A program made the position numbers and the translations under genes. The notes under the pieces are model-generated. The model saw only the letters and a list, made by a program, of their open reading frames with translations. It searched no databases and was not told the origin of the DNA. 64,000 bases of DNA from positions 186,001 to 250,000 of the forward strand of contig NIVC01001390.1 in the NCBI GenBank assembly GCA_002269645.1, written 5' to 3'. Origin of the DNA: Macrostomum lignano (lineage: Eukaryota). Shown in pieces: positions 2,602-56,722 of this stretch (position 1 is the first letter of the stretch; each line of letters opens with the position of its first letter).

Positions 2602-5229
2602 CTATTTGCAGATACTTCCCGCCATGCGCAATAGCACGCGCCCGTGTAACTCAGCGTTGGCGCCAGAAGCAACGACGCAGCCGGATCCGCTGCAGAAGGA
2701 ACCGCCGCCACCTCCGCTACCACTGGCACCTGAACTAGCACCGCCTCCACTGTAGCCGCCTCCGCCGCCACTGGCCCCCATCCGGGGCTCATCGCAACAG
2801 CCTCCGCCAGCGCCGCCTCCGCCGAAGCCGCCATCGCCAGTTGGGCATGAGCCGCTACGAGCACCACCCAGCCACCCTCCTGTAAGACTAATGCCGCCTT
2901 TGCCGGACTCTGCATAGGTGCAAGCGACGGCCGAGCTGCTCCAGCCGGCACCAGGACCGCTGCAGGAGCAGTCAAGAAAATTCATCGGACGATTGTCCGG
3001 CGTTGAACCGGCCTGCCCTGAAGCTCCTCCGCTGCCGCTGTACATATTTCCAATTGGACCAGCGCTAGTGGCGGTTGTATTTGAAGTGCCGTCAATGCCT
3101 GGAAAATACCAGCCCCATATTTAATTGCTTCGTACATGTAAATGCTCGAGTCTGTAACATGTACAGTAAAAATCTTGAATTGTGGCACAGATACAGACCC
3201 CTTCCGCAATGTGACGTCGGCCGTCTATCGATGTCTATGACAAATATGTTTAGCATTACATCGTCGAAAAATAACTCTCTCCCTTCTCGACCTGCTCCCT
3301 TCCTGAACTCTCCCTTCCCGACCCTCTCCCTACCTGACCGTCTCCCTTCCCGATCCTCTCCCTTCCTGACCCTCCTATCCCTTCCTGACCCTCTATACCT
3401 TTCTGACCCTCTACCCCTTCCTGACTCTCTGCCTTCCTAACCCTCTGCCTTCCTGACCCTCTGCCTTCCTGACTCTCGATCCCTTCCTGACCCTCTATCC
3501 CTTCCTGACCCTCTATCCTTTCCTGACCCTCTATCCCTTCCTGACCCTCTATCCATTCCTGACCCTCTATCCCTTCCTGACTCTCTGCCTTCCTAACCCT
3601 CTGCCTTCCTGAGCCTCTATCCCTTCCTGACCCTCTATCCCTTCCTGACCCTCTATCTCTTCCTGACCCTCTATCCCTTCCTGACCCTCTGCCTTCCTGA
3701 CCCTATAATGTGCGACTAATGCCGCCATTACATCGTCGAAAAATGACGTTATACATCGGCTGAACGTCGGTCTAATGTAAAAGTACATATTTGTCATAGA
3801 TTTCGGGAACGTTACCCTACGTCGCATTGCTCTACGGGCACTTCTCGTAGCCGTTAAACTTATAGTTTCCACACTAACCACTGAAGTGAACGGAACCGCC
3901 GCCACCGCCTCCGGCAGCGATCAGCAGTAGAGCCGCGCCACTGGAGCCGAGGGTGTAGGCAAAGCTGCCACCGCCGCCTCCAGCGCCGTAGGTGCAGCTG
4001 GTATTGCCTCCAGCCTGACCAACAACAATATTAAGTCGGGTCCCGGCAACCAGATAAAAGTTTCCAAACGCGGAGGCACCTTTTCCGCCTTTCATCGTAG
4101 TGCTCAGTCTAACCGGTACTCTTCCACCAGCGGCTCCGAATGCTTCAATACGATAGCAACCGGAAACGTTGATGATGCTGTTTTGAATAATTCCGTTTCG
4201 ACCAATGCCGCTAGCTGAAATATGCAGGTATATGTATTTAATCACCGTTAAGCTAAGCATGACGATACGTAAAATTACTTTCATGGAATGCTTCGATGCT
4301 GAAATCAAGGACTACTTGGAAACGTTTCTTGGAAAATGTTAGAAAGCAGGTTTTTCCGAAAAATTGAGTACTTTGCAGTGACTACTCTATAACTACGGCC
4401 GGGAAACTACAAAATTTGGAGGCCGATCTATTATTAAATTAGTCCTCAAAAAGCATTACTTCGATAGGTTTTTACCACAGACGCAAACGCACTGACTACA
4501 AGGGAGAATTTTTTTCGAAAAAACCAGCCTCTTAAAACTTTCCAAGAAACCAGGTTTCCTGTCCTTCTACTTGAGTAGTCCTTGGCTGAATTTTGAATTC
4601 GTAAGCAATAAAGCAAGTTTAGATGCTCATACTCTTTATCTTGACGTTATCACCCGGTCAAGTCATACAGTTTATAGGGTCTTAGGACCCTTATACATGT
4701 ATAGTGCCTTGATTTTAATACACGTTGATTACTTGTACTTTGCAAACGACTTACGAGTAAACAAGCGGTCTTGAAAGATCATTCTCGTCTTCAGCTGTCG
4801 CTCAAAATCATCCGATTTCCACACACGAACTGCAAAGTTGCCGGGCGAGCCGAGCTGTCTTGTCACGTGACTGCCGTTCGGTCCAGGCTGACCTGATGAC
4901 TCATCATTGATCAAGACCAGCTGGCAGACGTGACTGGTGTCATTCACGACTGCCACAACGCACAGTCGTTGCTCGCACCAAGACAGACATTCAGCGTCGG
5001 AGCGAAAGTTGTCGGACTCGTTGAATACGCTGCTGCTCACCGAGTCGTCAATGACGATCGATCGACTGGGTACAAGCTCGAACTCGCGGCCATCCGTAGC
5101 TGAAATCAAATTGGAGAAGAAAATTGCGCTAAAAAGATGAAAAAATCTATGAAAAAGCACAGCTACATAAGTATAATTCTCACCCATGATGCGAGCAACT
5201 AGTAGACCCACTAGCAGATAGATGGACAT
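2602..5229 (-). CDS. Secreted PAN/apple + ALK-like glycine-rich domain protein, paralog 1 (407 aa)
   Basis: Exons 5229-5184, 5099-4755, 4214-3879, 3098-2602. All introns are GT-AG phase 1 and the joined frame is open to TAG. Signal peptide MSIYLLVGLLVARIMA; PAN-type Cys motif ECLSWCEQRLCVVAVVNDTSHVCQL; ALK-GRD-like motifs CYRIEAFGAAGG, LNIVVGQ, GGGGGSF, LIAAGGGG, GAGW, GGFGGGG, GGGYSGG, HGRVLL. Confidence 0.85.
3198..3838. mobile_element. MITE-like element containing a 17-18-bp pyrimidine-rich minisatellite (intron 3 of paralog 1)
   Basis: Perfect 16-bp inverted pair 3234-49 / 3785-3800 and an outer imperfect pair GCAATGTGACGT / ACGTCGCATTGC. Internal CTTCCTGACCCTCTATCC array ~3275-3715, bracketed by a 19-bp direct repeat (3254-72, 3726-44). 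Confidence 0.5.
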
Positions 5230-6019
5230 TTGCAATTTCAGCTACGAGGTACGTCGAAGATATCGGTGTTAACTGAAGACTGGCCGTGAAAGGAGGGACT
5301 TAATTCTTGGTGGTTGCTTAAAATGGCTGCTGTTTATAAAGACATGGGCTGTTCGAGCAGCTACTTTTTAAATGACCTGCCAGTTACTAGAGTAGATGAT
5401 TGTTAAACTTAAAGAGCCTATATCTTAATTGCACGCGAGTTGTTTTAGAAGTGCACTTTGACTTTTACAAACGTCAGTTCTTGAAAACTGTCAATAAGTT
5501 CCTGAAGCTGTCTCGACAATGGCAAACACCTTAAACTACTGATGGATGCCCTCAAGTATAGCTTGCAGTGAAAAAACATTTACCAATAGTACAACTAAAA
5601 ATTGTCATCGTCTTCAGCAGCGTATTGCAAGTATAAAGCTCTGAATTTACGAGCTATATTAGATTCGTGTAAAATACGTTTGAGTTAAGTCGAGTCGAGT
5701 CGAGTCAAGTCGCTACTTTGGAGTGAAATCATTTGTGAGGCAACACCTCCACTCGCTGTATATAAAATAGTTGCCCGAGCGAATGTAAACACGAACGAAC
5801 AATATGTACTGTACTAGCTAGACATGATGTTGTTAGGTCGCCTACTCACTCGACAAGCCACCTAACCATCGAGGAGCGTACACAATGAAAATTATTAAGT
5901 GAAAGCTCGTTAATTGATAGGATGCTAAACAGTCCTTATACATGTATTGATCTAAACTGTTTTTAGAACGGTCGTCTTCTAAAATTTGAAGAGATGTTTC
6001 GGTAAATTCTCAGGTCAAA

Positions 6020-8069
6020 TCAACCACAAGTATCTCCTAATCGCGTCAGCAGCACTCGCCCGTGCAACTCCGTGTTGCTGCCAGCGACCATCACACAGTT
6101 GGTGCCGGAGCTGCTGCAGTAGGAGCCGCCACCGCCGCCGCCGATATTAGACTTCGAGCCAGCACCGCTGCCGCCTCCGCCGCCTCCGGCTCCGATGTGC
6201 TTCAACACGCAGGAGCCTCTACCGGCGCCGCTGCCGCCAAACCCGCCGTTTCCAGCGATGTTAGCGTAGCCGATAAGATCGCGCTCGCCTCCGAGCCAGC
6301 CACCTGAGATGCTCAGACCGCCGCCGCCGGGGTGATTGTAGCCGCACTTGGGAGCCGGGCCGCTCCACCCGGCTCCGGGACCGCGGCAGGAGACTGTCAA
6401 GTTTACAGAATACTGGGTGCCAAACGCACCTGCCGAGCCGTTTGTGCCGCCGGTACCGGCGTATACGTCAGCAGAATTGGAAGCAGATGTTCCACTGATG
6501 TCGTCATTGCCGTCGGCGCCTGCAAGTTACGAGCGTATTAATGCGATTGATTCAATTGATGTTTATATTATAGCGCAGCGAGTAAGTTTTAGTTTCTAAT
6601 TGGATCTGAGTCATAAAAATTTACAGAAAGAACGATTTTTATGCTATTTAGGTTTTGGCACCAATTCAAACGCTAGTTTTGTCATTTTTATCTAGAGAGT
6701 CATCCCGCTAATTAGTAAATAAATTAATACTCTTAATTAATCAGCAATTTGATTGCGTGAAGAAACGAATCAGCTACTTTGTTATGCTTTGCTTAAAGAT
6801 TTTAAGTCAAAGGTCAGCAAACTCCGGCCCTCAAAGCCTCCTTATTCGGCCCTCGGGTCCTTTGAAGTTTCACCATAGCATCCGTCCCGCTTTAAATTTT
6901 TCTTTTCTCAGCTCTCTTCTCTAATCTCCTCTCCACTTCTTTCCTCTTCTCCCCTCTTTCCTCTCCTATTTCATCCCTCATCCCCTCCTGCATTCTCTTT
7001 TTTTCTTTCCCTTATCTATCTCTCCTTTCTTCTATCTTCTATATGGCCCTTGAGATAAAAATGTTTGGGCCGACCCCAGCTTTATTTTAATTTGAACGAT
7101 GTTCCACGACTGCACCCAACTACTGTGTACCCCAGAAAACGGGTGTAGTTCGCCAGTTAGACAACAAAATAGAAGGCGATCAAAATCAGAAAAAATACAT
7201 TGTTGATCAGTTCGTACCAGATAAATAGCCTGACATGGCCCCGCCTCCTCCGGCCACTATAAGCGCATTGGAGCTGTTTTCAATGTACACGAAGCTTCCA
7301 CCGCCGCCTCCGGCGCCCAATGCGCAGGTGACATTTTCACCAGCCTGACCGACCACGATTTTCAGCTTGGTGCCAGCGGTAAGACGAAATTTTCCAGCTG
7401 CGTAAGCTCCTCTGCCGGGTCGAACTCCAGCATTAATAACGATAGTACTGCCGCCTGCTGCTCCGTAGGCCTGGATGCGGTAGCAGCTGGTAGAGTTCAC
7501 GGTGAACCTTTGGATGATTCCAATTCGACTGATACTTGTGTCTGCAGGTTACCGGAAGTTGATTCATTTTATTGTTATTGTTATTGTTTTGAGATACTCT
7601 TACTTCTGAAAATCAAATTAGCCAGTCGAGATTTTGGCTTTAACTGCGCCTGAAAATCATCAGCTTTCCACAGACGAACTGCAAAGTTGCCGGGCGAGCC
7701 GAGCTGTCTTGTCACGTGACTGCCGTTCGGTCCAGGCTGACCTGATGACTCATCATTGATCAAGACCAGCTGGCAGACGTGACTGGTGTCATTCACGACT
7801 GCCACAACGCACAGTCGTTGCTCGCACCACGACAGACACTCAGCGTCGGAGCGAAAGTTGTCGGACTCGTTGAATACGCTGCTGCTCACCGAGTCGTCAA
7901 TGACGATCGATCGACTGGGCACAAGCTCAAACTCGCGGCCATCCGTAGCTGAAATCAAATTTAAAAAAATCGCGATAAAATTCAATAAACAGAGGAGAAA
8001 ACGTTTTTAAAATTGCCAAATTCACCAATGATGCGAGCAAGCAGTAGGAAAACAAGATAGAAAAAACAT
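6020..8069 (-). CDS. Secreted PAN + ALK-like glycine-rich domain protein, paralog 2 (~403 aa; exon 1 carries a 1-nt frameshift, possible pseudogene)
   Basis: Exons 8069-8026, 7948-7604, 7541-7218, 6519-6020, GT-AG. Exons 2-4 join in frame with the same motifs as paralog 1. Exon 1 is 44 nt (phase 2) because of a T6 run after the ATG; a T5 run would give phase 1. Confidence 0.75.
6808..7079. mobile_element. hAT/Charlie-like MITE (degraded second copy at ~2328-2480)
   Basis: Ends CAAAGGTCAGCAAACTCCGGCCC ... GTTTGGGCCGACCCCAG resemble CAGGGGTCGGCAAAC-type TIRs. The internal sequence is shared with 2328-2480; no TSD seen. Confidence 0.5.
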
Positions 8070-8388
8070 TGGTCCTTCAGCTCATGCTTGACATTCAGAC
8101 AGTTGTTGGCTTCGGGTGAGAGTAGTTTTTTGAAAGCATCTGCCAGTTACGAGCGCGTACAAGTTTAGGTAAATTTAAAGTGTCATTATCCTAACATATT
8201 AAAGCATTTTATTTCATCATTCACTAACGCTTGAACAAGTGCAGTAGCTTCTTTAAAAGTGAGAAAATTTTTTGACAACTGACAGAATGTTCTCGACAGC
8301 AACTTCTTTGTCACGGAATGATAAACACTTCAACTGAAAATGATATCTAAAGTAGCAATCGATTTGAAGTTTTGCACGTCCTTCTTCT

Positions 8389-8569
8389 GGCTTACAGTGG
8401 GTACTTTCTCCGCGACTCTGTGGAGTGGGTCGGCTGTCGGTCTCGTTCCTGACACATCACATCATGCCTGACGTGCATGACGGCTTACAGTGGGTACTTT
8501 CTCCGCGACTCTGTGGAGTGGGTCGGCTGTCGGTCTCGTTCCTGACACATCACATCATGCCTGACGTGC
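8389..8569. repeat. Tandem duplication of 88 bp with a 5-bp spacer
   Basis: 8389-8476 is repeated at 8482-8569, separated by ATGAC. Confidence 0.9.
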
Positions 8570-10591: not shown

Positions 10592-12103
10592 TCAGATGCC
10601 CGCGTTGCAAGCGGCTGAGGCCGACTCAAGCAGAACGGACACGAAGCCCTGGTCGCCGGTCCAGGTGCCGCCGAACACGCAGCCGCCCCTGCAGAAGGAG
10701 CCGCCGCCACCGCCGATGTGGCCGTAGCCCAGTCCGGCTCCTCCACCGCTGAAGCCGCCGCCAGCTCCAGGGGTGCCTCTTACTGCGCTGGTCCTGCTGC
10801 CGCCTCCGCCGCCTCCGCCGAAGCCTCCGTCGCAGACGCTGCCGTCTCCCGCGCTGCCGCCGACCCAGCCGTCGGCCAGACTGCCGCCTCTCTCTCCGTC
10901 CGAGGAGCTCCGTCTGGGGCTGACGGCCCTGCCGAGCCAGCCGGCGCCGCAGCCGCCGTGGTTGCTTTCGCTTGGGGTGTCAGCGGGATTGTTGGAGCCC
11001 GGCTGACCGTTAGTTCCACCGAAGCCTAAGTTGGCGCTGTTGCTTCCCAGGCTGTCCGAACCGTTTATCCCAGTTTCCCCTGGTTTTCCTACAGTGAAAT
11101 AAAAGAATAAAGCAAACTGCTTATGCAAGTGGCTTCTTGAATCTTATAATTAACCATTTTAGCAACTGCAGCCACTGAGCTCACCATTTTTACCGTTGGA
11201 AGCTCCGCCGCCTCCGCTGGCAGCCAGCAGCAGCAGCTGGTCGCCCGTCTGGTACACGAAGCTGCCGCCGCCTCCGCCGCCTCCTTCGAACTCCAAAGAG
11301 GTCGAGCCGCCCATCTGGCCCACAACGATGCTCAGCTGGGTGCCGGCTGTCAGGTTGACTCTGGCGCTCACCTGGGCTCCCTGGCCTCCGGCTTTGTTCG
11401 TCAGTAAGTTTCCGCCACCTCTGGCGCCGGCAGCTTTGATCAGGTAGCAGCCGGTCGTGTTGATGAAGACGCTTTGGATTGAGCCGTTTCTACCTGTGCT
11501 GCTGTCTGCAATGGAACAGCGTCAGCGAGTTACAAAGCTGGAGTGAGTGCAATTTCGGTCTCTGCCGAAATCATGGTAGCCACCCACAACTAAGACTAGG
11601 CATTGATGACTCACTCCGAAGCTGCACTGCAGGCGAAGGCCAGTCGCTGTCCTCCGCCTTCCACACCTTTGCACCGACCTGAGATCCGATGACTTGCTGC
11701 ACCTGATCTGCTGAGATTGACAGCTTGGCGGTTGTTATGGTGACCATCTCGCACGTGGCATTGCTCTCCACCGAGACGGCAGCGCTGCAGCTCAGCCTGT
11801 GGCACTTTGCTAGACAGTCGATTACATCAGTGGCCTTGGTTGTTGTCGTGACGTTGTTGTAGGCGTTGAGAGCGACTTCCAGCATCTGAAGCTGCTGCTC
11901 TGAGCACACAGAATAGGTCCGCGAACTGGTGCCTTGTACTCGCAGCACGAGAGAGCAGCAAACTGTGTTGGGGCAGTGCGCAGTCCGTAATAAATACTCG
12001 TAGCATCCATTGAATAACTGTTAGCAAAGGTTTTCAATTGTCAAAGTGGCAGTCACTTACCGAACAGGGTAACTAATTGTAAAGTCAAAACTTTATCAGT
12101 CAT
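10592..12103 (-). CDS. Secreted PAN + ALK-like glycine-rich domain protein, paralog 3 (402 aa, most divergent)
   Basis: Exons 12103-12061, 11962-11615, 11505-11185, 11088-10592, all phase-1 GT-AG. Signal MTDKVLTLQLVTLFVCCSLVLRVQG; PAN motif DCLAKCHRLSCSAAVSVESNATCEM; GRD motifs GCYLIKAAGARGG, LSIVVGQMGG, GAGW, GGFGGGG, GGGFSGG. Confidence 0.8.
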
Positions 12104-16229: not shown

Positions 16230-16474
16230 GCGTACAGGGTCGAATCAGTTGGATAGTAGAATTGAGAGTCCAGTGGACTCTACACATGCTGTACGCTGCA
16301 CGACTATCCAACTGGTTCGACCCTGTACGCGTAGGATCAATTCGAATATCCAACTGGTTCGACCCTGTACGCCTAGGATTAATTCGACTATCCACTATCC
16401 AACTGGTTCGACCCTGTACGCCTAGGATTAATTCGACTATCCACTATCCAACTGGTTCGACCCTGTACGCCTAG
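16230..16474. repeat. 28-bp motif present once inverted and four times direct
   Basis: 16230-57 is the reverse complement (1 mismatch) of ACTATCCAACTGGTTCGACCCTGTACGC at 16303-30, which recurs three more times downstream. Confidence 0.85.
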
Positions 16475-16503
16475 CTACGAGTATACGCTGACTCTAAGCT
16501 GCT

Positions 16504-16685
16504 AGTTACAAAATTGGAGTGAGTGCAATTTCTGTCTGGGCCAAAGTCGTGGTAACCACCCACGACTACGACTCGAATCGATGCGTTGGGGCAGTGCGCG
16601 TTCAATAAAATACTCCGTAGCATACATTGAATGACCATGAGCAAGGATTTTCAAGTCAAAGTGGCAGTCACTTACCGAGCAGGGA
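16504..16685 (-). pseudogene. Remnant of a fifth PAN-GRD paralog (paralog-3-like) lacking the PAN exon
   Basis: 16504-16582 aligns by eye with 11522-11608 (intron 2). 16583-16685 aligns with 11966-12069 (intron 1, GTAAGT donor and end of exon 1). The intervening ~358 nt, including all of exon 2, are absent. Confidence 0.7.
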
Positions 16686-17410
16686 AAGGGGGGGGGGACG
16701 CCAAGCCTGTTGGAAAGAGAGGGGGCAGCCTGCCGGGAAGGGGGGGCGCCAAGCCTGCTGGAAAGGGGGGCGCCAAGCCTACTGGAAAGAGAGGGGGCGC
16801 CAAGCCTACTGGAAAGGGGGGCGCCAAGGCCTACTGGAAAGAGAGGGGGGCGCCAAGCCTACTGGAAATGGGGGCGCCAAGGCCTACTGGAAAGGGGGGC
16901 ACCAAGGCCTACTGGAAAGAGAGGGGGGCGCCAAGCCTACTGGAAATGGGGGCGCCAAGGCCTACTGGAAAGGGGGGCGCCAAGCCTGCTGGGAAGGGGG
17001 GCAACAAGCCTACTGGAAAGAGAGGGGGCGCCAAGCCTGCTGGGAAGGGGGGCGCCAAGCCTACTGGAAAGAGAGGGGGCGCCAAGCCTGCTGGAAAGGG
17101 GGGCGCCAAGCCTGCTGGGAAGGGGGGCGCCAAGCCTACTGGAAAGAGAGGGGGGCACCAAGCCTGCTGGAAAGGGGGGCGCCAAGGCCTACTGGAAAGA
17201 GAGGGGGCGCCAAGCCTGCTGGGAAGGGGGGCGCCAAGCCTACTGGAAAGAGAGGGGGGCGCCAAGCCTGCTGGGAAGGGGGGCGCCAAGGCCTACTGGA
17301 AAGAGAGGGGGCACCAAGCCTGCTGGAAAGGGGGGCGCCAAGCCTACTGGAAAGAGAGGGGGCGCCAAGCCTGCTGGAAAGGGGGGCGCCAAGGCCTACT
17401 GGAAAGAGAG
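16686..17410. repeat. G-rich 24-28-bp minisatellite
   Basis: Units GGAAA(GAGA)GGGGGCGCCAAG(G)CCT(A/G)CT. Confidence 0.95.
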
Positions 17411-18255
17411 GGGGCGTCAAGCCTGCTGGAAAGAGCCGCAGTCTCCGGAGCAGTGCTGTGGAACAGGCTCGGAAAATCCAATTGTCCAAGATAGAGCTTC
17501 ACCGCTCAGTTTGGCAGGTGCCGGAATTCGTTACCCCGTATTCAGAGAAAATCTACCGAATAACCTACTTGCGCAACTCTTCACTGCAGCTGTCCCATCC
17601 AATGCGGCTGTGTGGACGAGCTTCAACAAGGACTTTTTCGATCTGTGCGCCTACTATGGCGGCACTCCCACTGTCGATGGCGACCCGATCAACATCACCT
17701 GCGTGCAGGCGGTCGCTGGCAGGTACTTCGTCATCTACAAGAACGTCTCTGGACTCTCGGATACATCGTTTCACCTGTGCGAGATCGACATTCTAGCTGG
17801 TGAGTTCCAAGATAACTGACGAGTTCAGCGAGTCTAATTGGAATCTCCTATCGATAAAATAACACAAGTCAGCGCTACCCGACGCACCCAAACACACAGC
17901 GCGAACATCACAGAGCGCACTTTTGCCTGTTCGAGAAGCCACGGAATTCAATGCCACCGATTTTCTTTCAGTCGTGCCCAAAGGCGCCCACGTCGCTTTC
18001 CGCATGCAGGAGATGCAGCCCAGCTTCGTTTCACCACTGGCCACTCGACCGTACAGCTCTGCTGTGATGGCCTGGATCGATAAGTGCGGTCAGCAGTGCC
18101 GCGACAACTCGCTGTGTCGTTACTTTCTGTTCTCTACTAAAAGCGGCAACTGCTCGATGTTCCAGTACTTCAGCTTCCCACGCGACTTCATCGGAATTTG
18201 GAGCGGAGAGGAAAACGCCTTCCTTCTGGTTTGTATTTTCGATCTGAGAGTGTGA
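17410..18255 (+). CDS. F-type lectin (FTP/discoidin)-like + PAN domain protein, 5' end missing or obscured
   Basis: Exon ending 17799 (G|GTGAGT) encodes LCAYYGG..NITC..AGRYFVIY..FHLCEIDI, like an FTP C-terminal half. Exon 17939-18255 joins in phase 1 and encodes PAN-like CGQQCRDNSLCRYFLFSTKSGNCSMF. Upstream the frame runs into a G-rich minisatellite with no recognisable start or signal peptide. Confidence 0.55.
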
Positions 18256-36521: not shown

Positions 36522-39500
36522 ATGCTTTGGTCAGCAGCGGCTATGCATCTCAGTCGGTTTGCAGCACTGATTCTGCCTGCGCTGTGCCTGACTCGCTCAG
36601 CGGCACTCGGCTCAGAGTCCGACTGCTACTCACCGACATCCGCTGCTACACGCTACGATAGCAAAGCTGTCTTTGGTAACCATGGCGACCAGGAACAACG
36701 CGAAGCCAAATATTGCGAGCCGCCATTCGAAAATCTGGCTGTCAATCGCCAGGTAGTTGCCAGCAGCACCTGTGGCAGCCCCCCAATTCGAGTCTGCAGT
36801 CGTAGAGGTTTCTGCGACCTGTGCGACTCTGAGCAGCGGAAGTTGAGCTATTCAGCCAGTCACCTGACCGACTATCACGTGCACAGCACCTGTTGGATTT
36901 CCGGTCGAGTTTCCCCTGACGATTCAGGTGTGAATCTGACGCTCAGCTTGGGCAAGAAGCACACGGTTTATTACGTGAGTCTGACAGACTGCGGATTGGG
37001 GCTGCCCGACGCTATTGAGGCCTACAAGTCAGCGGACTTCGGTGCCACCTGGCAGCTGTGGCACCTGTTCTCCAACAACTGCAGTGCCGACTATCCAGGG
37101 CACAGGGCCGGCTATTCGTACGACTTTGGAGTTTATATTAGTAAGGGGATAATGCTAGTTTCTTCTGCAGTACGTGTATTGTATGTGTTGAATTTTTGTA
37201 AGTTGCCTGTACTTAATTACATCCGTAATGTAGGTGTAAGTTGCCTGTACTTAATTACATCCGTAATGTAGGTGTAAGTTGCCTGTACTTAATTACATCC
37301 GTAATGTAGGTGTAAGTTGCCTGTACTTAATGACATACGTAATTTTAGACACCTGTACTTAATTTAATTGCATCCGTAACGTTAAATAACTGTACTTAAT
37401 TACATCCGTTGTGTAAGCTACCTGTGCTTAATGTCATATCATCCGTAATGTAAGCTACCTGTACTTTGAGATATCCCTGACGAATTCTGGGTTGCATATT
37501 GAAGTTACCTTTTTCAAGGTACATCACGCACTCTCTCTCTCTGGACCCTTCACTCTCGCCGTTCCTCAAAGATCCTCGCGAAGTGGTCTGCAGCGACACC
37601 AGCCAGGTGGATCCTGCCGTCCCCGGATCGGCCAACTCCGACACCGACAAGTTCGACTCTTCGCCACACTCCGACGAAAATCGAAGAAGCAACTCGATGG
37701 ATCGAATCGTCCTGAGCTTCAGCACGAACTTCAAGCGCTATCGGCCGCAGGAAGATCGCGATCGCGACCCAATCATCGCCGACTGGATGCTGGCGACCGA
37801 CATCCGGCTGCTGCTCCGACGCAAGCAGCGCCGACAGCAGTCGCCACTCTCGGATTGGAGAAGCCGTCGTCGAGATTTTCCAGCTGTTGCCGTTGGCGAC
37901 GCTTTCGCCCTTTCGAATATCGACGTTGGCGGCCGGTGCTTCTGCAACGGGCACGCGGCCCGGTGCCTGCCGAACTCGAAGGCGGGCGGGCCGGGAGCCA
38001 GCGTCTGCGACTGCCAGCACGGCACCGAGGGCGAGGACTGCGAGCGGTGCAAGCCGTTCTGGGTCGACCTGCCGTGGAGGCGCGGCACGCAGGAGCAGCC
38101 GACGCAGTGTCGACGTGAGTGGCCTGACTTGGCCTTTAGCTCGGGGTGTTTATCAGTTTAGCTAGCTATGGGGTGTTTATCAGTTTAGCTAGCTGTGTGG
38201 TGTTTATCAGTTTAGCTAGCTATGTGGTGTTTATCAGTTTAGCTAGCTATGGGGTGTTTATCACTTTAGCTAGCTATGGGTGTTTATCAGTTTAGCTAGC
38301 TATGGGGTGTTTATCAGTTTAGCTAGCTGTGTGGTGTTTATCAGTTTAGCTAGCTATGGGGTGTTTATCAGTTTAGCTAGCTATGGGGTGTTTATCAGTT
38401 TAGCTAGCTCTAGGGCGGGAGCCGTAGCCCAGTGGCCCAGCCCGGCGCTCTGATGTGCCAGCGGCCCAGGCTCGATTCCAAGTGCAGTCGCATTAATTTG
38501 GGGCTAAATTGGAATCTCGGCTTGGCTCTGCTCGTGCAATTAACAACAAAGCCCTTGAGAGCCAGCTTCCAAGGCACAGTGAAGTGTACACTCCTGTGCG
38601 ATGTGTGCCTGTGGGTATGACGTATCCGCGAGCTTGTGTGCCTGCTCAGGGAAGTCGGCGTAATGGGCAGCAATGCCTCTCGCCGGTTGTGTGACAATGT
38701 CGCTTAAAGTGCGCCAGGGTGCACACAACCCTTTGCTTCTAGTAAAACAAAGATCTAGGGTGTTTATCAGCGTGTAGGAACAAAAGGCAAGACTGAGATT
38801 CACTGGGTCTGAGTATCCATTAAGTATCTCTCTGAAAGGAAACTAACCCAAGAGACAGCTGGGAATTCAAAAATAAAAAACATATTTAAACATGTTCGTG
38901 ACCAGTTAATGAGTGGTCATTGCGTGATAAGTCTGTGATTGCTCAATTTCTAGGGCAGTTCATTAGCAAAAAATTTTTCTGGTGCTGTGGAAGTGGGCAC
39001 CAGTAATTACCAATAAGTTGCCAAGGACCACTTAAGGACTACTGAAGTGACTTCAGTGGTCCTTGTAGGTTGCCAGATTGAAACGGAATTTCGATTAAAA
39101 ATTCACTTTTTTTCCAAGCTGATGTGCGAAATAAATTTAATTTAGGTCTAATTTTTATTACCCATTTTATGATCTTTTTTATACCCTGACACGCAAGCCA
39201 AACTTCTGGCTTCCGATGTAGCTTTGTTGGAATAGAGTTGTATTGAGAGTGATAGAGGAGCGAGGCTGGGAGAGTGACGGGAGTGAGGCTGAGAGAGTGA
39301 CAGTGTGAGGCTGAGAGAGTGACAGGGGAGTGAGGCTGAGAGAGTGACCGTGTGAGGCTGAAAGAGTGACAGTGTGAGGCTGAAAGAGTGACAGTGTGAG
39401 GCTGAAAGAGTGACAGTGTGAGGCTGAAAGAGTGACTGTGTGAGGCTGAAAGAGTGACAGTGTGAGGCTGAAAGAGTGACAGTGTGAGGCTGAAAGAGTG

Positions 39501-42500
39501 ACAGTGTGAGGCTGAAAGAGTGACAGTGTTAGGCTGAAAGAGTGACAGTGTGAGGCTGAAAGAGTGACAGTGTGAGGCTGAAAGAGTGACAGTGTGACGC
39601 TGAAGGATTGACAAGGGAGCGAGGCTGAAAGAGTGACAGTGTGAGGCTGAAAGAGTGACAGTGTGAGGCTGAGAGAGTGACAGTGTGAGGCTGAGAGAGT
39701 GACAGGGAAGTGAGGCTGAGAGAGTGACCGTGTGAGGCTGAAAGAGTGACAGTGTGAGGCTGAAAGAGTGACAGTGTGAGGCTGAAAGAGTGACAGTGTG
39801 AGGCTGAAAGAGTGACAGTGTGAGGCTGAAAGAGTGACTGTGTGAGGCTGAAAGAGTGACAGTGTGAGGCTGAAAGAGTGACAGTGTGAGACTGAAAGAG
39901 TGACAGTGTGAGGCTGAAAGAGTGACAGTGTGAGGCTGAAAGAGTGTCAGTGTGAGGCTGAAAGAGTGACAGTGTGAGGCTGAAAGAGTGACAGTGTGAG
40001 GCTGAAAGAGTGACAGTGTGAGGCTGAAAGAGTGACAGTGTGAGGCTGAAAGAGTGACAGTGTGAGGCTGAAAGAGTGTCAGTGTGAGGCTGAAAGAGTG
40101 ACAGTGTGAGGCTGAAAGAGTGACAGTGTGAGGCTGAAAGAGTGACAGTGTGAGGCTGAAAGAGTGACAGTGTGAGGCTGAAAGAGTGACAGTGTGAGGC
40201 TGAAAGAGTGACAGTGTGAGGCTGAAAGAGTGACAGTGTGAGGCTGTGAGAGTGACCGTGTGAGGCTTAGAGAGTGACATAGGAGTGAGGCTGAGAGAGT
40301 GACAGGGGAGTGAGGCTGAGAGAGTGACAGGGGAGTGAGGCTGAGAGAGTGACAGGGAGTGAGGCTGAGAGAGTGACAGTGTGAGGCTGAGAGAGTGACA
40401 GAGTGAGGCTGAGAGAGTGACAGAGCGAGGCTGAGAGAGTGACAGAGGAGTGAGGCTGAGAGAGTGACAGTGTGGTGCTGAGAGGGACGATATGAGGCTA
40501 AAAGAGTGACAGCTAGGAGTGCGGCTCTGAGACCCTGCAAGGACCACAAGCCGCAATAATTGTCTGACAGTGGTGACTCATGTCGCACTCATGTCAAGCA
40601 GGTAAGAAGTTACCTACCTTCGAGCAGGACTGCCCACTTAACTTTTCATTACTCTCAAGGCAATAACGCTGATCTTTATTGTTTCGCTGGGATAATGTTC
40701 TCTAGAAATATAATAGGCTATGTATTTTATTCTTTAGAAGCAACAACAATAGCCTAAACCTACACAGATAGAATACGCTCAGTTGAGAGAAAGAGAACTG
40801 AGAGAAAGAAATGCCAATGCATCAGAGAGAATCAAGAGGAATTGCGCAGCAAAGGCACAAAATTATGATAAAAAGTTCGTATTTTATCATCTGTGTGCCA
40901 TTTTTTACTTTTTTTAATTATCTAATATTCGCCGTTTAGAACACTGACCCCTACTGGGCTGGCACGACTAAACGGCGCGTGGTTAAATCTTGAATTTATA
41001 GCCCGAAAAATGTGACTTATGCAAAATCCTTTGAGTTATTTAGCGTAGATTGCTAGATGGTTATTGGACTGGTAATTAAAGATAAGGATAGAGGCTTGGC
41101 ATGAGAGAAGGCGGGATTAATTAGTGAGACAGAGAGTGAGAAGAGATAAGACAGAGTGAGATAAGATAAGAGAGACTGAGAAGAGATAAGAGAGAGCGAG
41201 AAGAGATAAGAGAGGCTGAGAAGAGATAAGAGAGGCTGAGAAGAGATTAGAGAGGCTGAGAAGAGATTAGAGAGGCTGAGAAGAGATTAGAGAGGCTGAG
41301 AAGAGATTAGAGAGGCTGAGAAGAGATTAGAGAGGCTGAGAAGAGATAAGAGAGAGCGAGAAGAGATAAGACAGAGCGAGAAGAGATAAGAGAGGCTGAG
41401 AAGAGATAAGAGAGAGCGAGAAGAGATAAGACAGAGCGAGAAGAGATAAGAGAGGCTGAGAAGAGATAAGAGAGGCTGAGAAGAGATAAGAGAGGCTGAG
41501 AAGAGATAAGAGAGGCTGAGAAGAAATAAGAGAGGCTGAGAAGAGATAAGAGAGGCTGAGAAGAGATAAGAGAGGCTGAGAAGAGATAAGAGAGGCTGAG
41601 AAGAGATAAGAGAGGCTGAGAAGAGATAAGAGAGGCTGAGAAGAGATAAGAGAAGCTGAGAAGAGATAAGAGAGGCTGAGAAGAGATAAGAGAGGCTGAG
41701 AAGAGATTAGAGAGGCTGAGAAGAGATAAGAGAGAGCGAGAAGAGATAAGAAAAGCTGAGAAGAGATAAGAGAAGCTGAGAAGAGATAAGAGAGGCTGAG
41801 AAGAGATAAGAGAGGCTGAGAAGAGATAAGAGAGGCTGAGAAGAGATAAGAGAAGCTGAGAAGAGATAAGAGAGGCTGAGAAGAGATAAGAGAGGCTGAG
41901 AAGAGATAAGAGAGGCTGAGAAGAGATTAGAGAGGCTGAGAAGAGATAAGAGAGAGCGAGAAGAGATAAGAAAAGCTGAGAAGAGATAAGAGAAGCTGAG
42001 AAGAGATAAGAGAGGCTGAGAAGAGATAAGAGAGGCTGAGAAGAGATAAGAGAGGCTGAGAAGAGATAAGAGAGGCTGAGAAGAGATAAGAGAAGCTGAG
42101 AAGAGATAAGAGAGGCTGAGAAGAGATAAGAGAGGCTGAGAAGAGATTAGAGAGGCTGAGAAGAGATAAGAGAGAGCGAGAAGAGATAAGAAAAGCTGAG
42201 AAGAGATAAGAGAAGCTGAGAAGAGATAAGAGAGGCTGAGAAGAGATTAGAGAGGCTGAGAAGAGATTAGAGAGGCTGAGAAGAGATAAGACAGAGCGAG
42301 AAGAGATAAGAGAAGCTGAGAAGAGATAAGAGAGGCTGAGAAGAGATTAGAGAGGCTGGGAAGAGATAAGACAGAGCGAGAAGAGATAAGAGAGGCTGAG
42401 AAGAGATAAGAGAGGCTGAGAAGAACCGGAACTAAGATCGAGTCAAAAACTCGATGCATGAGAGAGGACAGACGGAGCGGTCAACAGAAATGTTATTACT

Positions 42501-48201: not shown

Positions 48202-48275
<74 letters not shown>

Positions 48276-50931: not shown

Positions 50932-51268
50932 GTGGCTGTAGCCTATAGTGGCCCAGCCCGGCGCTCTGATGTGCCAGCGGCCCAGGCTCGATTCCAAATG
51001 CAGTCACATTAATTTGGGGCTAAATATTGGAATCTTGGCTTGGCTCTGCTCGTGCAATTAACGGCCTTGAGGGCCAACCCCCAAGGCACAGTGAAGTGTA
51101 CATGCCTATCGAAAAATAAAGTTAGGGCCGCTGTACACTCCTGTGTGAGTGTGTGCCTGCGCGTATGACTGCGTACGTATCCGTGCGCCTGCTCAGGGGA
51201 GTCGGCGGAATGGGCAGTAGTGCCTCTCGCCGGTTGCGTGACAATGTCATTTAAAGTGTGACAGGTGC
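50932..51268 (+). mobile_element. SINE family B, copy 3 (with ~30-bp insertion)
   Basis: Collinear with copies 1-2; extra sequence between duplicated TGTACA motifs near 51098-51137. Confidence 0.75.
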
Positions 51269-52758
51269 TAGCTCACAGCCCACCTGCCTTTAATAAAAAA
51301 CAGCAGAGCTTACAGCAACTTAGCTTACGCTACATCACATTGTAGGTCGAAAAGACCTCCCTCCCTCTGCGATGCCGCTTGATCTCAGGACTCTGGGAGA
51401 CGGCCATAAAACAGCAATTATGATAATTAAATTCCTGCCATCAGCATCCCTATACTTGTTGGGGGGGGGGGTAGAAAAGCAATTATGAAATATGCCTCTA
51501 ATGCTCCTATCTACATATTCTTCCCTGTTGCTTTTATGTGGGCCCGATTAATCATCGGCATTGCAGTTTTTCCGTCATCTCATTAAATATGCAGTTTGAA
51601 TAACTAACTAACAACTGCAATGAGTTGATACCTACCTGCCGACAGACCATTTTTAGTATATACGGATTTGATGATGGCCTCTAAAGTTAGTGAACCCAAA
51701 CACGGGGCGTCGCCACCGGGGGGACAGTGGGACATGCCCCCCCCCAGTAAAATCTGAGGGGACATGCCAATGCTTGTCCCCCACCCAACCGTGTGACTCC
51801 CCGGGCTGCCAAATAACGTTGCTCCAACAAAAGATTTTTATACTAGAGGTAAAGTACAAAATAGCCGTTGTAAAAACGTTAAAAAACGTTGGTCCACAAT
51901 GAAATGTATTATACTCTAAAAGTTCCAACTCTCCCACTAACAGTACCAGCTAAAAAACATGTGCAGCAAACCTATAAAAAGTTGCGAATACGATACAAAT
52001 TTAACACGAAGCTACTATACTACATTCAAGTGTCCGTCCATTTGACGGCTGTATCTCAGTAGCCTGATCGAGACATGCTAATTTTCAACATTTTTAGATT
52101 GGTCTAGTCGGTGTCTAGAGCAGAAAGAATCATGTCTCTATCTCAATCAGCATTCGAGATATCCAAAGGCGGCGATTCCGCTAATTCTAATGCATTCTAA
52201 ATGGAAAAATCATTGAAAATCAATCAGGACGACTTGCCAAGCTCTATAAGTAGTCAATCAAAGACCTGAGTAGTAATCAGAGACCTGATTTGCAGCAGTA
52301 GATGTTTAGATTGGTCTTTTGGGCCGTAAAATTATATTCTTAAAAATGAATAACATGGAATTTTCTGGAAAACTGTTTTCGCAATTGTGAAAAATATACA
52401 TGTACCAGCTACTACAATTTTTCATGAGGAAATATTCGAGGAGATACCGAAAAAATAAGATGTCAAAACGACCCACATTGTTGTGATTTATTTTATTGCT
52501 GAATTCAATGCGCTGATGCAGTAACGAGTACCTTTATAAAATTTCGCACTCCCCGCCATGGCTAATGATCGAGCTTGATGCAGGGATGATCGCTCTTTCT
52601 CCAGGGGCGTAAGGGGGGAGAAGGGGTGGAATTTTTTATTGCCTTTGTATTTGGCCGGCCTTTATTGAACTTTATTGTAACCACAAGGACAACGTACCCT
52701 TCGGTGATCCCCATTAGTGACCTGCATCGGAACCGTGGTGACCCAATTCATGGTGGTA

Positions 52759-52980
52759 GGGTCTGTATAAAAGCTGGACACATTGGACACCCCTTATTTT
52801 AACAAAAGTCGAAACTTGTTGATGCTAATAATTCAAATATTGCCATAAGCGTATGCAAAATTGTAATAATAAAAAATATTTACACGTTTTTATAAAAACA
52901 AAGTATATTAACTAATGTTAAAATAAGGGGTGTCCAATGTGTCCAGTGTCTAATACGTGTCCGGCTTTTATTCATACCCC
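52759..52980. mobile_element. MITE with 9-bp TSD (Mutator-like), 222 bp
   Basis: TSD ATGGTGGTA at 52750-58 and 52981-89 (10 bp if the adjacent C is counted). GGG...CCC ends; perfect 31-bp inverted repeat 52774-52804 / 52916-52946. Confidence 0.8.
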
Positions 52981-54019
52981 ATGGTGGTACTACGTACTAC
53001 TTGAAGTTAGGCGGTCAAACAAAAGATATTCTTAACTGGTAGATATAGAAACAGTAGCGCATTATATACATACTCAGCAAGAGTCAAAAGTGCCACCCCC
53101 CGCGCATATATCGTGCGTGTTAAAAATTCAACCTCCGAGTTAACGTAACTCCAACCGTGAACTGCACAATTATTTCATTATTGCTCTTCTAAGATTTTTT
53201 AAGCAAACACGAGGGCGAAAAATGTCGACTTGCGTGAAGGGTGGCACTAGCTGTTATTATAACTGTTTTGAACAATACATAAGGAGATGAACGAACTTGT
53301 GAAAACATAGTCGAAAAATAATGTAATAATTTGTCAGAAAGCTTTTGAAATGAAAAATTATAATGTGTAATTTGTAATGTGTAATGTGTAAAACTATTAA
53401 ATTAGGTAAATTTAGAAAATACGAATAAATTCAAATATCTTTAATGAATAGTTTTTTCATAATTGAAATCTGTAAAACAGATGAATTAGCTACTAAAAAG
53501 CTAAAAAAATCATTTTCAGCATTGGTACGAGTATAGTACATCTATTAAAACCTAAATTCAAAAGCGAATAAGCACAAAACTTTATTAAAAAAAGTTTTGT
53601 TCTTATTATCAGTGCATTACGAATTTTCACAAACTTAAAAATATCAAAATATGTGTAGATATTTAACAAAAACGTTTTTCTCTACTCGATCCATATGATG
53701 TTACCTTGAAACAAAAAATTTGTAACGCATCACAGAGCGTGCGTTTTTTTATCAGAAACTGGACTTCAAAAAAAACAGCTATTTCCGAGGCAAACTGTCC
53801 CTAATCATCCCAATAAAACTAAAAGAACACTCTTATGGTACTTGGGTATCATCAGGCCAAGGTGGAGGCAAGCAGGGCCCATTCTGCTGAACCTTGAGCA
53901 CGCACACGGATGCCTATGCAGGCTAAATAGAAAGAATCGCACGAAAGCCTCAAGACTAATTTTTGACGAACGAGTTACAAACGAATGTGGCCGAAATCGA
54001 TCGCGGGTAATTTGCCCTC

Positions 54020-54320
54020 TGATGCTGGCGCCCCTAGTGCTGGCAACCCTGGTGCTGGCGCCCCTTGGTGCTGGCGCCCCTTGGTGCTGGCGCCCCTTGG
54101 TGCTGGCGCCCCTTGGTGCTGGCGCCCCTTGGTGCTGGCGCCCCTTGGTGCTGGCGCCCCTTGGTGCTGGCGCCCCTTGGTGCTGGCGCCCCTTGGTGCT
54201 GGCGCCCCTTGGTGCTGGCGCTCCTTGGTGCTGGCGCCCCTTGGTGCTGGCGCCCCTTGGTGCTAAAGCCCCTTGGTGCTAAAGCCCCTTGGTGCTAAAG
54301 CCCCTTGGTGCTAAAGCCCC
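54020..54320. repeat. 16-bp minisatellite
   Basis: GGCGCCCCTTGGTGCT, ending in AAAGCCCCTTGGTGCT variants. Confidence 0.95.
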
Positions 54321-54484
54321 CGGTTCTGGAGTCCTCCGATGGCGCCTACGAGACAGCGCCGTTATTAATGGCTCCAAAATGGCACCCGAATAAAAATTCT
54401 GCCTAGGCCCAAGGTACATGTATTTTGGAGAGAGGTTAAGCGTTAGCGAACTCGGTCCCAGCTAGGCCAAACTGGTGTACTAGT

Positions 54485-56722
54485 TCAAGCGCACGTGTCT
54501 CCCAGCCGTCTCAGCAGCACTCGACCGTGCCACTCAGCGTTAGCGCCGGCGACCATCACGCAGCCGCCGCCGCCACTGCTGCAATAGGAGCCTCCGCCGC
54601 CGCCGCCGCTATTAGACTTTGAGCCAGCGCCGCCACCGCTGTAGCCGCCACCGCCGCCTCCGGCGCCAAATTTGTTCGACGAGGCACAGCCGCCGCCGGC
54701 GCCTCCGCCGCCAAATCCGCCGTTGCCAGCGACGTTGGTGCAACTGATGGCGTTGCGTAAACCGCCGAGCCAGCCACCGGAACGGCTCAGACCGCCGCCT
54801 CCAGGTTGGTTGTAACCGCACTTGTTGGCCGCGCCGTTCCAACCGGCTCCGGGACCGCCGCAGGAGACAGTCATGTTTGTCACGAATTGACTGCCGAACG
54901 AACCTGCAGCGCCGTTGGTGCCGCCGGCGCCGGAGTACGTGTCGGCAGAGTTATAGGCGGATGTTCCGCTGGTGGCATTGTTGCCATCCATGCCTGGTAT
55001 ATTTCGTTTAATGAATGGTTTTAAAGATCAATAACGGTTAAATAGGGCTTTGACTAAACTCGGTCTAGAGGCATCAATCTAAAACTTTGCTTGATCGAGT
55101 TACGAGCGTAGATCTGTCCCTAGTAACATTTTTTAAAATTAGTCGAAGTCGCAACGGTTGCCATGCTAAAGTTTGGAATAAAAATGGACAATATACCTGG
55201 CCTTCCAAAGTTACGACTGATGTCTAGAAAGTTCTGATACATTTAATCGGAGAGCAAAAACGTAACAATGTTCAATTGGTGTACATTGTGTACACTTAGA
55301 CTCTTAGGAATAAAAGTGTCAGAACTTTCCGAACACCTCTCGAACAAAAACTGAAACTTCCTAATACTGGTTGCTGAATTTTGCGACTGTGGCGACCTTT
55401 TAAATTTCCTGATCGATGCTCTGTGTAATAAAATTTTTACCTGGGGTAAAGCCCGACATTGCGCCGCCGCCTCCGGCAACCAGGATCGGATATGTGTCGC
55501 CTTCGATGTACACGAAGCTTCCACCGCCTCCTCCGGCGCCAACTGGGAAGGAGACGACGTTCTCACCAGCTTGACCGACCACGATTTTCAGCACAGCGCC
55601 GGCTGTTAGGTTATAGTTCACGGCGGCGTAAGCTCCATAGCCGGGCCGAACTCCCGCGTTAACAACGGTCGTGCTGCCGCCAGCTGCTCCGTAGGCCTGG
55701 ATGCGGTAGCAGCCGGTACTATTGATCGTGTAGTTTTGAACGAGTCCCGACCGGCCAGTACTTGAATCTGCAACCAGGTTAGGATGCAAAATATTAGTAC
55801 ATTTTAGAGTACTTCATGCTACTTCAAGACTAGAGAGTTTTCAGTCCAAAGTTGTTACCCGGGTACACAAACAAGGTAACAGCGGCAGCGGCGAGAAGGC
55901 AAGATGTCTTGCTCATTCCACTGACTACTAGAAGTTACCGTTGAATCATCTCAAATGCGACTGAAGTAATCTATATATTGAGTTGATTTTGATTGATTTT
56001 GAGTGTTCCGTCCTTCTACTTTTTTAGTCCTTGAATCAGATATGGAAAATTGTTTTAAGGCCCGAACTCCGGACGTTGGTGCACAGCGGTCACAGGCATG
56101 CATACGCTCTGTGCATTGTGAGTCAGCTCTTCAAGGTCGTGAATCGCAAAAAAATGCTCAGCAAAATTTTCACGCTCCAGCGGGCCCAAATAAATGTGCG
56201 ACTTACTTTTGAAAACGACATCACTAATTGGAGCCTTCGATTTGAGCTGCGCCTCAAAGTCTTCCGCTTTCCACACGCGCACCGCGAGATCGTTGGGCGA
56301 GCCGAGCTGCCTGGTCACGTGACTGCCGTTGGGACCCGGCTGGCCCGTCGACTCATCGTTGATAACGGCCATCTGGCAGACTTTGCTAGTGTCGTTCACG
56401 ACGACGGCAACGCAGAGTTTCAAGTTGCACCAAGACAGACATTCGACATCGGATCGAAAGAAGCTGGTCTCATTCAACAGGTTGCTGCTTACCGAGTCGT
56501 CAATCACGATAGACCGGCTGTTCAAGAGTTCAAACTCGCGACCGTTCGTCACTGAGCGAAAATCGTTGGGTAAAACCATATCGATGTGTAATAAAGAAAA
56601 TGAAATGGCACTGATTCAAAGAGGCAATGAAAATATTCAGGCTAAACCCTTTCATGTACATGTAAATGTAAGTAACACTCACCTGTCGCAAGAAGCAGAA
56701 TGGCAATCAATTGGTAATGCAT
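54485..56722 (-). CDS. Secreted PAN + ALK-like glycine-rich domain protein, paralog 4 (406 aa)
   Basis: Exons 56722-56683, 56551-56207, 55767-55441, 54993-54485, all phase-1 GT-AG, open to TGA. Signal MHYQLIAILLLATVTNG; same PAN and GRD motifs; the PAN exon is 345 nt as in paralogs 1 and 2. Confidence 0.85.

Follow-up and report, generated by a model that had tools for sequence, protein, structure and literature searches.

PAN and glycine-rich domain proteins encoded by a four-gene cluster of the flatworm Macrostomum lignano

Locus and gene organization

The 64-kb window of Macrostomum lignano DNA analyzed here (the whole stretch under study, in whose coordinates all positions are given unless another sequence is named) contains four genes, G1 to G4, each coding for a PAN-like module followed by a glycine-rich domain (GRD) of the type known from ALK and LTK. 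All four lie on the minus strand. They were located by tblastn with candidate exons, which returned four collinear sets of three coding blocks at 2.6-5.1, 6.0-7.9, 10.6-11.8 and 54.5-56.5 kb. G1, G2 and G3 form a head-to-tail tandem at 2.6-12.1 kb; G4 stands apart at 54.5-56.7 kb, separated from the tandem by 42 kb carrying unrelated genes. The interval 2602-56722, delimited in a first-pass annotation of this DNA, runs exactly from the stop codon of G1 (2602) to the ATG of G4 (56722). A search of all six frames of the window with exon-level hidden Markov models (HMMs) recovered each coding exon four times and no more.

Each gene consists of four exons with GT-AG introns, and every junction is in phase 1 as read from the DNA at each boundary. 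The first-pass annotation had ascribed this structure to four genes plus a remnant; the exon and phase layout was confirmed for G1-G4, but the remnant is devoid of exons, and the assembled G2 carries a frameshift. The encoded proteins share one layout, namely a hydrophobic leader, a PAN-like module with four cysteines (exon 2), a complete GRD (exons 3 and 4) and an in-frame stop. The products are 407 aa (G1), 402 aa (G3) and 406 aa (G4) long. The translation of exons 1-3 of one of the genes is 100% identical to UniProt entry A0A1I8GEQ5_9PLAT.

Exon 1 of G1 (5184-5229) holds the ATG and the leader MSIYLLVGLLVARIM and ends in phase 1 at the donor GTGAGA. Exon 2 (4755-5099, 345 nt), with both ends in phase 1, encodes the PAN/apple-like module with its four-cysteine core, exon 3 (3879-4214, 336 nt) the TNF-like first half of the GRD with the motifs YRIEAFGAAGG and GGGGGSF, and exon 4 (2602-3098, 497 nt including the stop codon TAG at 2602-2604) the second half with its poly-Gly motifs, ending in HGRVLLRMAGSICK. 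The parts of G2 are exon 1 (8026-8069, 44 nt), in which the ATG is followed by a run of six T and which is out of frame with exons 2-4, exon 2 with the PAN/apple-like module (7604-7948, 345 nt), exon 3 with the first half of the GRD (7218-7541, 324 nt) and exon 4 with the second half (6020-6519, 500 nt including the stop codon TGA), from which the YSG of the motif GGGGGYSGGG is missing.

G3 starts with exon 1 (12061-12103, 43 nt), which encodes MTDKVLTLQLVTLF plus a G and ends at the donor GTAAGT. This exon was missing from the first-pass annotation and was located through the conserved donor TTCG/GTAAGT, which is also kept in a relic at 16.5 kb described below. The end of the leader and a divergent PAN/apple-like module are encoded in exon 2 (11615-11962, 348 nt), the first half of the GRD in exon 3 (11185-11505, 321 nt) and the second half in exon 4 (10592-11088, 497 nt including the stop codon TGA). 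Two phase-1 donors are possible for exon 3, which would end at 11185 or 11194; the former is preferred because it is collinear with the paralog P0004. In G4, exon 1 (56683-56722, 40 nt) encodes MHYQLIAILLLAT plus a G and has the donor GTGAGT, exon 2 (56207-56551, 345 nt) the PAN/apple-like module, exon 3 (55441-55767, 327 nt) the first half of the GRD, and exon 4 (54485-54993, 509 nt including the stop codon TGA at 54485-54487) the second half, ending in HGRVLLRRLGDTCA.

Leaders and protein termini

The leader of each protein is a Met followed by a hydrophobic stretch of 10-20 residues and then by small residues (maximum Kyte-Doolittle KD-11 value 2.5-2.8). Each protein carries 6-9 NxS/T sequons and about 20% glycine, with 12 cysteines in G2 and G4. 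No credible transmembrane segment or hydrophobic C-terminal tail was found in G1-G4; past the leader, the highest Kyte-Doolittle 19-residue windows (1.06-1.72) fall in a polar core strand of the PAN module. Judged by these features, the G1-G4 proteins are apparently secreted and soluble.

Every protein stops 6-12 residues past the final HGRV/QGFV strand of the GRD. The homologous stop position is shared by all four window genes, three M. lignano paralogs (P0004, P0005 and P0009) and the PAN+GRD proteins of corals. Directly behind G2 comes a complete gene with its own ATG and leader, and the same is true of G3; the sequence downstream of G4 is AT-rich, repeat-rich and free of long open reading frames (ORFs). 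No EGF match was obtained with Pfam (hmmscan) in G1-G4. No kinase exon was detected across the 64-kb window by tblastn with the human ALK kinase domain; the best match (E=0.089) lies on the opposite strand at 53654-53818 (+) and was rejected, as it is AT-rich with stop codons in all frames. Both the earlier statement that the proteins stop without EGF, transmembrane or kinase parts and the description of them as soluble GRD proteins lacking a receptor part agree with these data, the latter as far as a stand-alone, apparently secreted PAN+GRD protein can be recognized from its sequence.

Glycine-rich domain

The GRD of G4 was matched to LTK (PDB chain 7nx0) by phmmer against PDB sequences with E=1.1e-5, and the match covers G4 residues 126-402, which is the whole domain. 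A profile built from G4 and 66 relatives recovers ALK (2.5e-18), LTK (3e-15) and C. elegans SCD-2 (2.3e-11). The alignment of these 67 sequences has 26 invariant columns and about 70 with conservation of 90% or more. The motif set comprises Y.I.A.GA.GG, GGGGGSFVY, AAGGGGG, GAGW, GGFGGGGG, GGGGGYSGGG and GGGGGS(Y/F)C, and is kept in G1, G3 and G4. The final GRD strand reads EWHGRVLLRRLG in G4 and ENHGEVEIRRHG in LTK.

Structural evidence comes from P0004, a 419-aa M. lignano protein closely related to G3, which was modeled with AF2. The predicted local distance difference test (pLDDT) score of the model is 73 and reaches 88-95 in the TNF-like half. At E≤1e-3, Foldseek returned 21 matches to the PDB, and each is a GRD structure of ALK or LTK (E=1.2e-9 to 4.4e-6), with target-normalized TM-scores of 0.36-0.58 and 18-24% identity. 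The best fold match besides ALK/LTK is a cyanophage Pam3 fibre (probability 0.6-0.75). The end-to-end LTK match, the profile hit to ALK and this comparison with the ALK ectodomain bear out the reading of exons 3 and 4 as a complete ALK/LTK-type GRD, and the homology to ALK/LTK is judged to be real from sequence profiles and modeled structure.

The window GRDs thus have the same predicted fold and the same motif set as the ALK/LTK GRD (PF12810; PDB 7LRZ, 7LS0, 7MZW, 7NX0-7NX4 and 7LIR), in which a TNF-like beta-sandwich is interleaved with poly-Gly segments, and they share its C-terminal strand motif HG.V.I/L. Unlike ALK, the window proteins have no EGF-like module, transmembrane helix, kinase, MAM, LDLa or heparin-binding part, and carry a PAN module in front instead. 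The ALK GRD contains fourteen polyproline II (PPII) helices, and glycine-rich PPII helix lattices form rigid flat scaffolds in the tail-fibre adhesin gp38 of phage S16 and in snow-flea antifreeze proteins (PMC12227593). The likeness to gp38 and the antifreeze proteins is an analogy only; no match of either to the window proteins was found in sequence or fold.

In kinship, the G1, G3 and G4 domains are far nearer to GRDs that are not linked to a kinase. Their best single-domain phmmer scores against non-kinase GRDs of cnidarians, a choanoflagellate and several bacteria are 40-96 bits, versus at most 13 bits against the GRD of human ALK. On this sequence evidence G1-G4 appear to belong to the non-kinase branch of the domain and not to be ALK receptors that lost their kinase.

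PAN/apple-like module

The core pattern C-x3-C-x4-C-x11-C (ECLSWC-x4-C-x11-C) is kept in exon 2 of G1-G4 and in the paralogs, and C46 and C58 of the module are near-invariant or invariant. The module of G3 is the most distant, with 21-25% aa identity to those of G1, G2 and G4. The M. lignano family member P0135 matches a PAN HMM with 23.5 bits, above the gathering score of 21.4, and P0004 and P0009 are named 'Apple domain-containing protein' in UniProt. The fold was tested on exon 2 of G4 alone, for which an AF2 model with pLDDT 77 was obtained. Only PAN/apple folds head its Foldseek list, whose top 25 matches are led by the HGF NK1/N-domain and plasminogen, followed by the MIC4 apple domain, Wsc1, SML-2, FXI and leech antiplatelet protein; probabilities reach 1.0, with E of only 7.5e-3 and TM-scores of 0.46-0.55. 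A profile built from the PAN exons alone recovers only M. lignano proteins.

The predicted alpha/beta fold and the four-cysteine core pattern are those of known PAN/apple modules (HGF/plasminogen N-domains, FXI/prekallikrein, MIC4, SML-2), and the N-terminal position in a secreted protein is likewise matched. The window modules differ from them in being too divergent for the Pfam PAN HMMs, in having four cysteines versus the six of true apple domains, and in a conserved VWK..D motif that follows the module in the flatworm proteins.

Related proteins in M. lignano and other organisms

About 20 further M. lignano entries of the family are present in UniProt (P0002-P0006, P0009, P0010, P0013, P0110, P0121-P0128 and P0135). 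Truncation affects most of these models, which either read into intron 3 or begin at an internal Met; P0001 represents exons 1-3 of G4 read into intron 3. Many entries carry the automatic names 'receptor protein-tyrosine kinase' or 'Protein kinase domain-containing', and no kinase is present in the sequences inspected. One of them, P0135 ('receptor protein-tyrosine kinase', 2348 aa), was considered as the ALK of M. lignano and rejected, since it is a chimera of PAN-GRD genes and IFT140 and a Pfam scan found no kinase in it.

Searched against 1.84 billion representative proteins, with clusters at 50% identity, the GRD profile matched 7,747 clusters at E≤1e-3, of which 3,034 reach E≤1e-10. The matches range over bacteria, a choanoflagellate and cnidarians, and many are giant proteins with two to eight GRDs. 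Named examples are Monosiga brevicollis MONBRDRAFT_33536, a Nematostella 'loricrin' (EGF+GRD), a Pocillopora 'Apple domain-containing protein' and jellyfish proteins. Bacterial examples include a 'glycine-rich protein' of 3,708 aa with a type IX secretion system (T9SS) signal from Flavobacteriia, a GRD behind a pilin-like N-terminus, and an FN3+GRD protein of Bacillus cereus. The bacterial and protist non-kinase proteins have the same domain as the window proteins, with 35-45% identity over the TNF-like half, and bear export or surface signals throughout (T9SS sorting domains, type IV pilin-like N-terminus, signal peptides). They differ in their partner domains, in often having two to eight GRDs and in having no PAN module in front. 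Cnidarian relatives bear the automatic names 'loricrin', 'PE-PGRS' and 'glycine-rich cell wall structural protein'.

The closest counterparts in architecture are found in corals. Proteins of 399-456 aa annotated with PF00024 and PF12810 occur in Acropora palmata (LOC141860800), Porites harrisoni (ABFA07_017308), Stylophora pistillata (AWC38_SpisGene21703) and Pocillopora meandrina, with the same order of leader, PAN, GRD and stop and a similar size; PAN+EGF+GRD variants are likewise annotated. G4 is collinear with Acropora P0077 from the last PAN cysteine pair to the C-terminus (34% identity). The coral proteins contain long insertions such as 'SVEVKGGQSTxKTAAxLGxSVEDNAG', and an additional small module or EGF domains are present in some of them. 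As in G1-G4, the introns at the domain boundaries of the coral genes are in phase 1. The P. harrisoni gene (2001-5385 of the P. harrisoni sequence used) has three exons and two phase-1 introns, with the GRD in one exon, in contrast to the extra phase-1 intron within the GRD of G1-G4. The divergent M. lignano paralog P0009 (NIVC01002498.1, 8001-9917) also has three exons and a single-exon GRD. The intron that splits the GRD is therefore peculiar to the clade of G1-G4. No similarity between the flatworm PAN exons and the coral PAN+GRD proteins was detectable by profile-profile comparison (hhalign), and for this reason common ancestry and independent exon shuffling are placed on an equal footing as explanations that may account for the common architecture.

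No description of non-receptor PAN+GRD proteins was found in the literature. The papers found treat the glycine-rich region as a feature of ALK/LTK, and the sole mention of PF12810 outside ALK concerns three Drechmeria coniospora proteins of unknown function. The family had been thought not to be characterized; this agrees with the literature found, but the architecture is already present in coral RefSeq and UniProt records, next to thousands of non-kinase proteins that carry the GRD alone or in several copies. The non-kinase family to which the window proteins belong is very large, catalogued and unstudied; they are not truncated receptors, and their architecture is not new.

Sequence evolution of the cluster

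The ratio of nonsynonymous to synonymous substitution (dN/dS, Nei-Gojobori) lies between 0.15 and 0.57 for every exon pair among G1-G4. Exons 3 and 4 of G2 and G4 have unsaturated dS (0.61 and 0.75), with dN/dS of 0.38 and 0.26. Between G1 and G2, dS is 0.23 in exon 2, with dN/dS of 0.37, and about 1.4 in exons 3 and 4. From these ratios, which include unsaturated pairs, it follows that the coding exons were under purifying selection in the past. A tract of 334 bp (4801-5134 in G1, 7650-7980 in G2), comprising exon 2 and 35 bp of intron 1, is 95.5% identical, whereas G1 and G2 are only about 65-70% identical outside it. The mosaic pattern indicates exon-level gene conversion.

The coding sequence of G2 as assembled has 1213 nt (a remainder of 1 modulo 3), and no in-frame ATG lies upstream of its 44-nt first exon. 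The T6 run is located at 8061-8066, right after the ATG, and a run of five T would give MFFYLVFLLLARII in frame. The frameshift is either very recent, making G2 a young pseudogene, or a homopolymer error of the assembly. The YSG positions missing from exon 4 are invariant or at least 90% conserved among 67 relatives, and G2 has GGSGAGRG where GGGGAGGG is expected.

The remnant of the first-pass annotation corresponds to a non-coding relic of a G3-like gene (16501-16687, minus strand, about 190 bp), detected with blastn and containing no coding exon. Its exon-1 donor and intron 1 (83% identity) run straight into a piece of intron 2 (84%), exon 2 having been cleanly deleted, and no exon 3 or 4 follows. 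Neither tblastn (E≤10) nor the exon HMMs in six frames found a coding remnant or a fifth exon copy in the window. Minisatellites lie on both sides of the relic, at 16301-16474 and 16693-17433.

Proposed function and alternative explanations

The anatomy of the PAN+GRD proteins is near certain. Carbohydrate or protein binding is established for PAN/apple modules (HGF-heparin, FXI, apicomplexan lectins), and where the function of a GRD is known, it is a ligand-binding platform. From these two precedents, the surface or secreted nature of the relatives and the phage PPII scaffolds, a secreted binding protein is therefore proposed. The best explanation of the locus, with a probability of about 0.55, is a lineage-specific M. 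lignano cluster of secreted two-module binding or recognition proteins from the non-kinase GRD branch. The cluster would comprise a tandem of three copies, a fourth that is dispersed, and a decayed relic. Each protein would be a Cys-rich chain of about 400 aa, with an N-terminal PAN/apple module and a GRD formed by a TNF-like beta-sandwich and a polyglycine-II (PGII) helix lattice. Cleavage of the signal peptide would release it outside the cell, where the PAN module would dock to carbohydrate or protein and the rigid GRD would present a second recognition surface. It could serve as a lectin-like recognition or agglutinating factor, or as a binding constituent of what the epidermis or glands secrete. 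Tandem duplication and exon-level gene conversion would diversify the family while individual copies decay, and ALK/LTK would represent a divergent GRD attached to a kinase.

Several observations weigh against this reading. The splice junctions and 3' ends of G1-G4 were read from genomic DNA alone, and G2 may be a pseudogene. In the Pfam comparison suggested for the spliced proteins, PF12810 (ALK_LTK_GRD, formerly Gly_rich) matched G2 alone, with 21.4 bits (E=2.8e-4) and thus below the gathering score of 24.5; hmmscan of the full G1, G3 and G4 proteins gave no PF12810 match at E≤0.1, and no Pfam PAN family was matched by G1-G4 at that threshold. The near-silence of Pfam is probably due to its compositional bias correction. 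A precomputed PF12810 match is on record for P0001, whose sequence is the same as G4 residues 1-240, and paralogs and chimeric models exceed the gathering score. Because Pfam is nearly silent on both modules, the PAN and GRD assignments rest on profile and structure evidence. The GRD fold was modeled on P0004, a close paralog or allele of G3, as a proxy for the window proteins, and the Gly-rich half of that model reaches only moderate confidence, with a root-mean-square deviation of 6-9 Å. In the comparison of scores, human ALK was the sole ALK used, with a GRD sequence reconstructed from an alignment. The supplements of three M. lignano papers (seminal-fluid screen, adhesion proteomics and neoblast/germline signatures), covered in part for some files, contain no annotation with PF12810, 'glycine rich protein' or PAN, and those of two of the three contain no ALK/LTK names. 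The binding function itself is weakly supported, being drawn purely from domain precedent.

The main rival to a binding or recognition role, unlikely but the strongest of the alternatives, is that the proteins are structural or material components secreted in bulk (mucus, rhabdites, adhesive, eggshell or stylet matrix), with the Gly-rich fold as a rigid building block and the PAN module cross-linking the matrix. A glycine content of about 20%, secretion and a tandemly expanded, multi-copy gene set would suit such a material, as would the cnidarian names 'loricrin-like' and 'glycine-rich cell wall structural protein' and the pairing of the GRD in several annotated relatives with EGF modules, a typical element of matrix proteins. 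Those names are automatic and driven by composition, however, and the glycine sits in conserved motifs of a folded domain rather than in low-complexity repeats, as seen in the 26 invariant columns and in dN/dS below 1. The annotation terms of the family are also absent from the supplements, some files in part, of the adhesive-footprint proteomics of M. lignano.

Far less probable is that a flatworm ALK-type receptor has its ligand bound by these proteins as soluble decoys, carriers or co-receptors; decoys and carriers were the leading suggestion of the first-pass annotation. The fold is that of the ligand-binding module of ALK/LTK, and the C-terminal strand resembles that of LTK. The suggestion implies close kinship to a receptor GRD, which is not what the scores reveal; the values against non-kinase GRDs are so much higher than those against human ALK that a decoy origin is unlikely. 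The low identity to ALK/LTK in the structural alignments points the same way, as do the lack of a kinase in any M. lignano family member inspected and the many fast-diverging paralogs, which are not expected of a dedicated decoy. The ALKAL/Augmentor ligands are known as vertebrate proteins, which also counts against it.

Equally improbable is a largely non-functional cluster of decaying duplicates in a highly duplicated genome. The frameshift and the lost near-invariant motif of G2 and the relic at 16.5 kb are consistent with decay, and none of the four stop codons has a canonical AATAAA or ATTAAA hexamer within about 490 nt. Yet G1, G3 and G4 retain complete ORFs with intact splice sites and the Gly, Cys and aromatic positions that are invariant in the family, and the dN/dS values remain low even in pairs with unsaturated dS.

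That G1-G4 are incomplete models, the 5' parts of longer genes with EGF, transmembrane or kinase exons downstream or outside the window, is the least probable alternative: their derivation from genomic DNA, the mere 2.6 kb of window downstream of G1 and the unreliable, truncated or chimeric public M. lignano models of the family leave room for it, but it is opposed by the homologous in-frame stop that extends to paralogs and corals, the complete genes that follow G2 and G3, the absence of a kinase-like exon in 64 kb and the sequence found beyond G4.

Significance of free-standing GRDs

Kinase-linked GRDs are a small minority of the very large family recovered by the profile, although the papers found discuss the GRD almost only in ALK/LTK; the non-kinase members inspected, which come from bacteria, a choanoflagellate, cnidarians and the flatworm, are secreted or located at the surface. 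A speculative extension of the binding or recognition role, and a rather unlikely one, is that PAN-GRD proteins are an ancient secreted recognition family common to cnidarians and bilaterians, keeping as a free-standing module what was later fused to a kinase in ALK/LTK. If so, the PGII/TNF-like surface would bind still unknown extracellular ligands, for example microbial or glycan surfaces or an endogenous cue, and small soluble PAN-GRD proteins could reveal the original binding partner of the GRD. M. lignano is genetically tractable, with RNA interference, transgenesis and in situ protocols. An expanded set of PAN+GRD proteins of about 400 aa in this animal makes the function of a free-standing GRD testable. 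Public databases already contain the domain family, the architecture seen in corals and the M. lignano genes; new here are lineage-specific, better-modeled members, and the spliced models of G1-G4 correct four public models in a family whose M. lignano models are truncated or chimeric and in many cases misnamed as kinases.

Neighboring genes and repeats

The region between the tandem and G4 contains a homologue of coatomer beta' (COPB2; 27456-35482, plus strand), with WD40, COPA/B beta-propeller and TPR hits, and a gene with Laminin_N and laminin-EGF domains (netrin- or laminin-like; 36522-38161, plus strand). Beyond G4 lies a gene of the amiloride-sensitive sodium channel (ASC) family (58114-59370, minus strand). 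An ORF at 17923-18252 (plus strand) matches Pfam PAN_1 with 23.5 bits, above the gathering score. The ORF that precedes it, ending at 17816, encodes a C-terminal domain that contains cysteines and has no Pfam match, and is itself preceded by an array of 24/51-nt repeats that is open in several frames. The region 16693-18255 (plus strand) may represent a further gene for a secreted PAN protein with no relation to the GRD family.

Minisatellites are very abundant in the window, with about 30 arrays of 12-50 nt units in up to 120 copies (for example 24469-27237, 28153-29186, 29725-31118, 31717-33023, 39262-40512 and 41137-42424). Several lie within the COPB2 and laminin-N gene regions, in intron 3 of G1 (3296-3704) and just downstream of G4 (54023-54312). 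Many are open in several frames and give rise to long spurious ORFs. The spacer between G2 and G3 contains a perfect tandem duplication of 93 bp (8389-8569, 1.9 copies, 100% identity). A segment of about 130 bp in intron 3 of G2 (6834-6962) is 76% identical to 2352-2471, just past the stop codon of G1, and is probably a dispersed repeat or the trace of a duplication unit.

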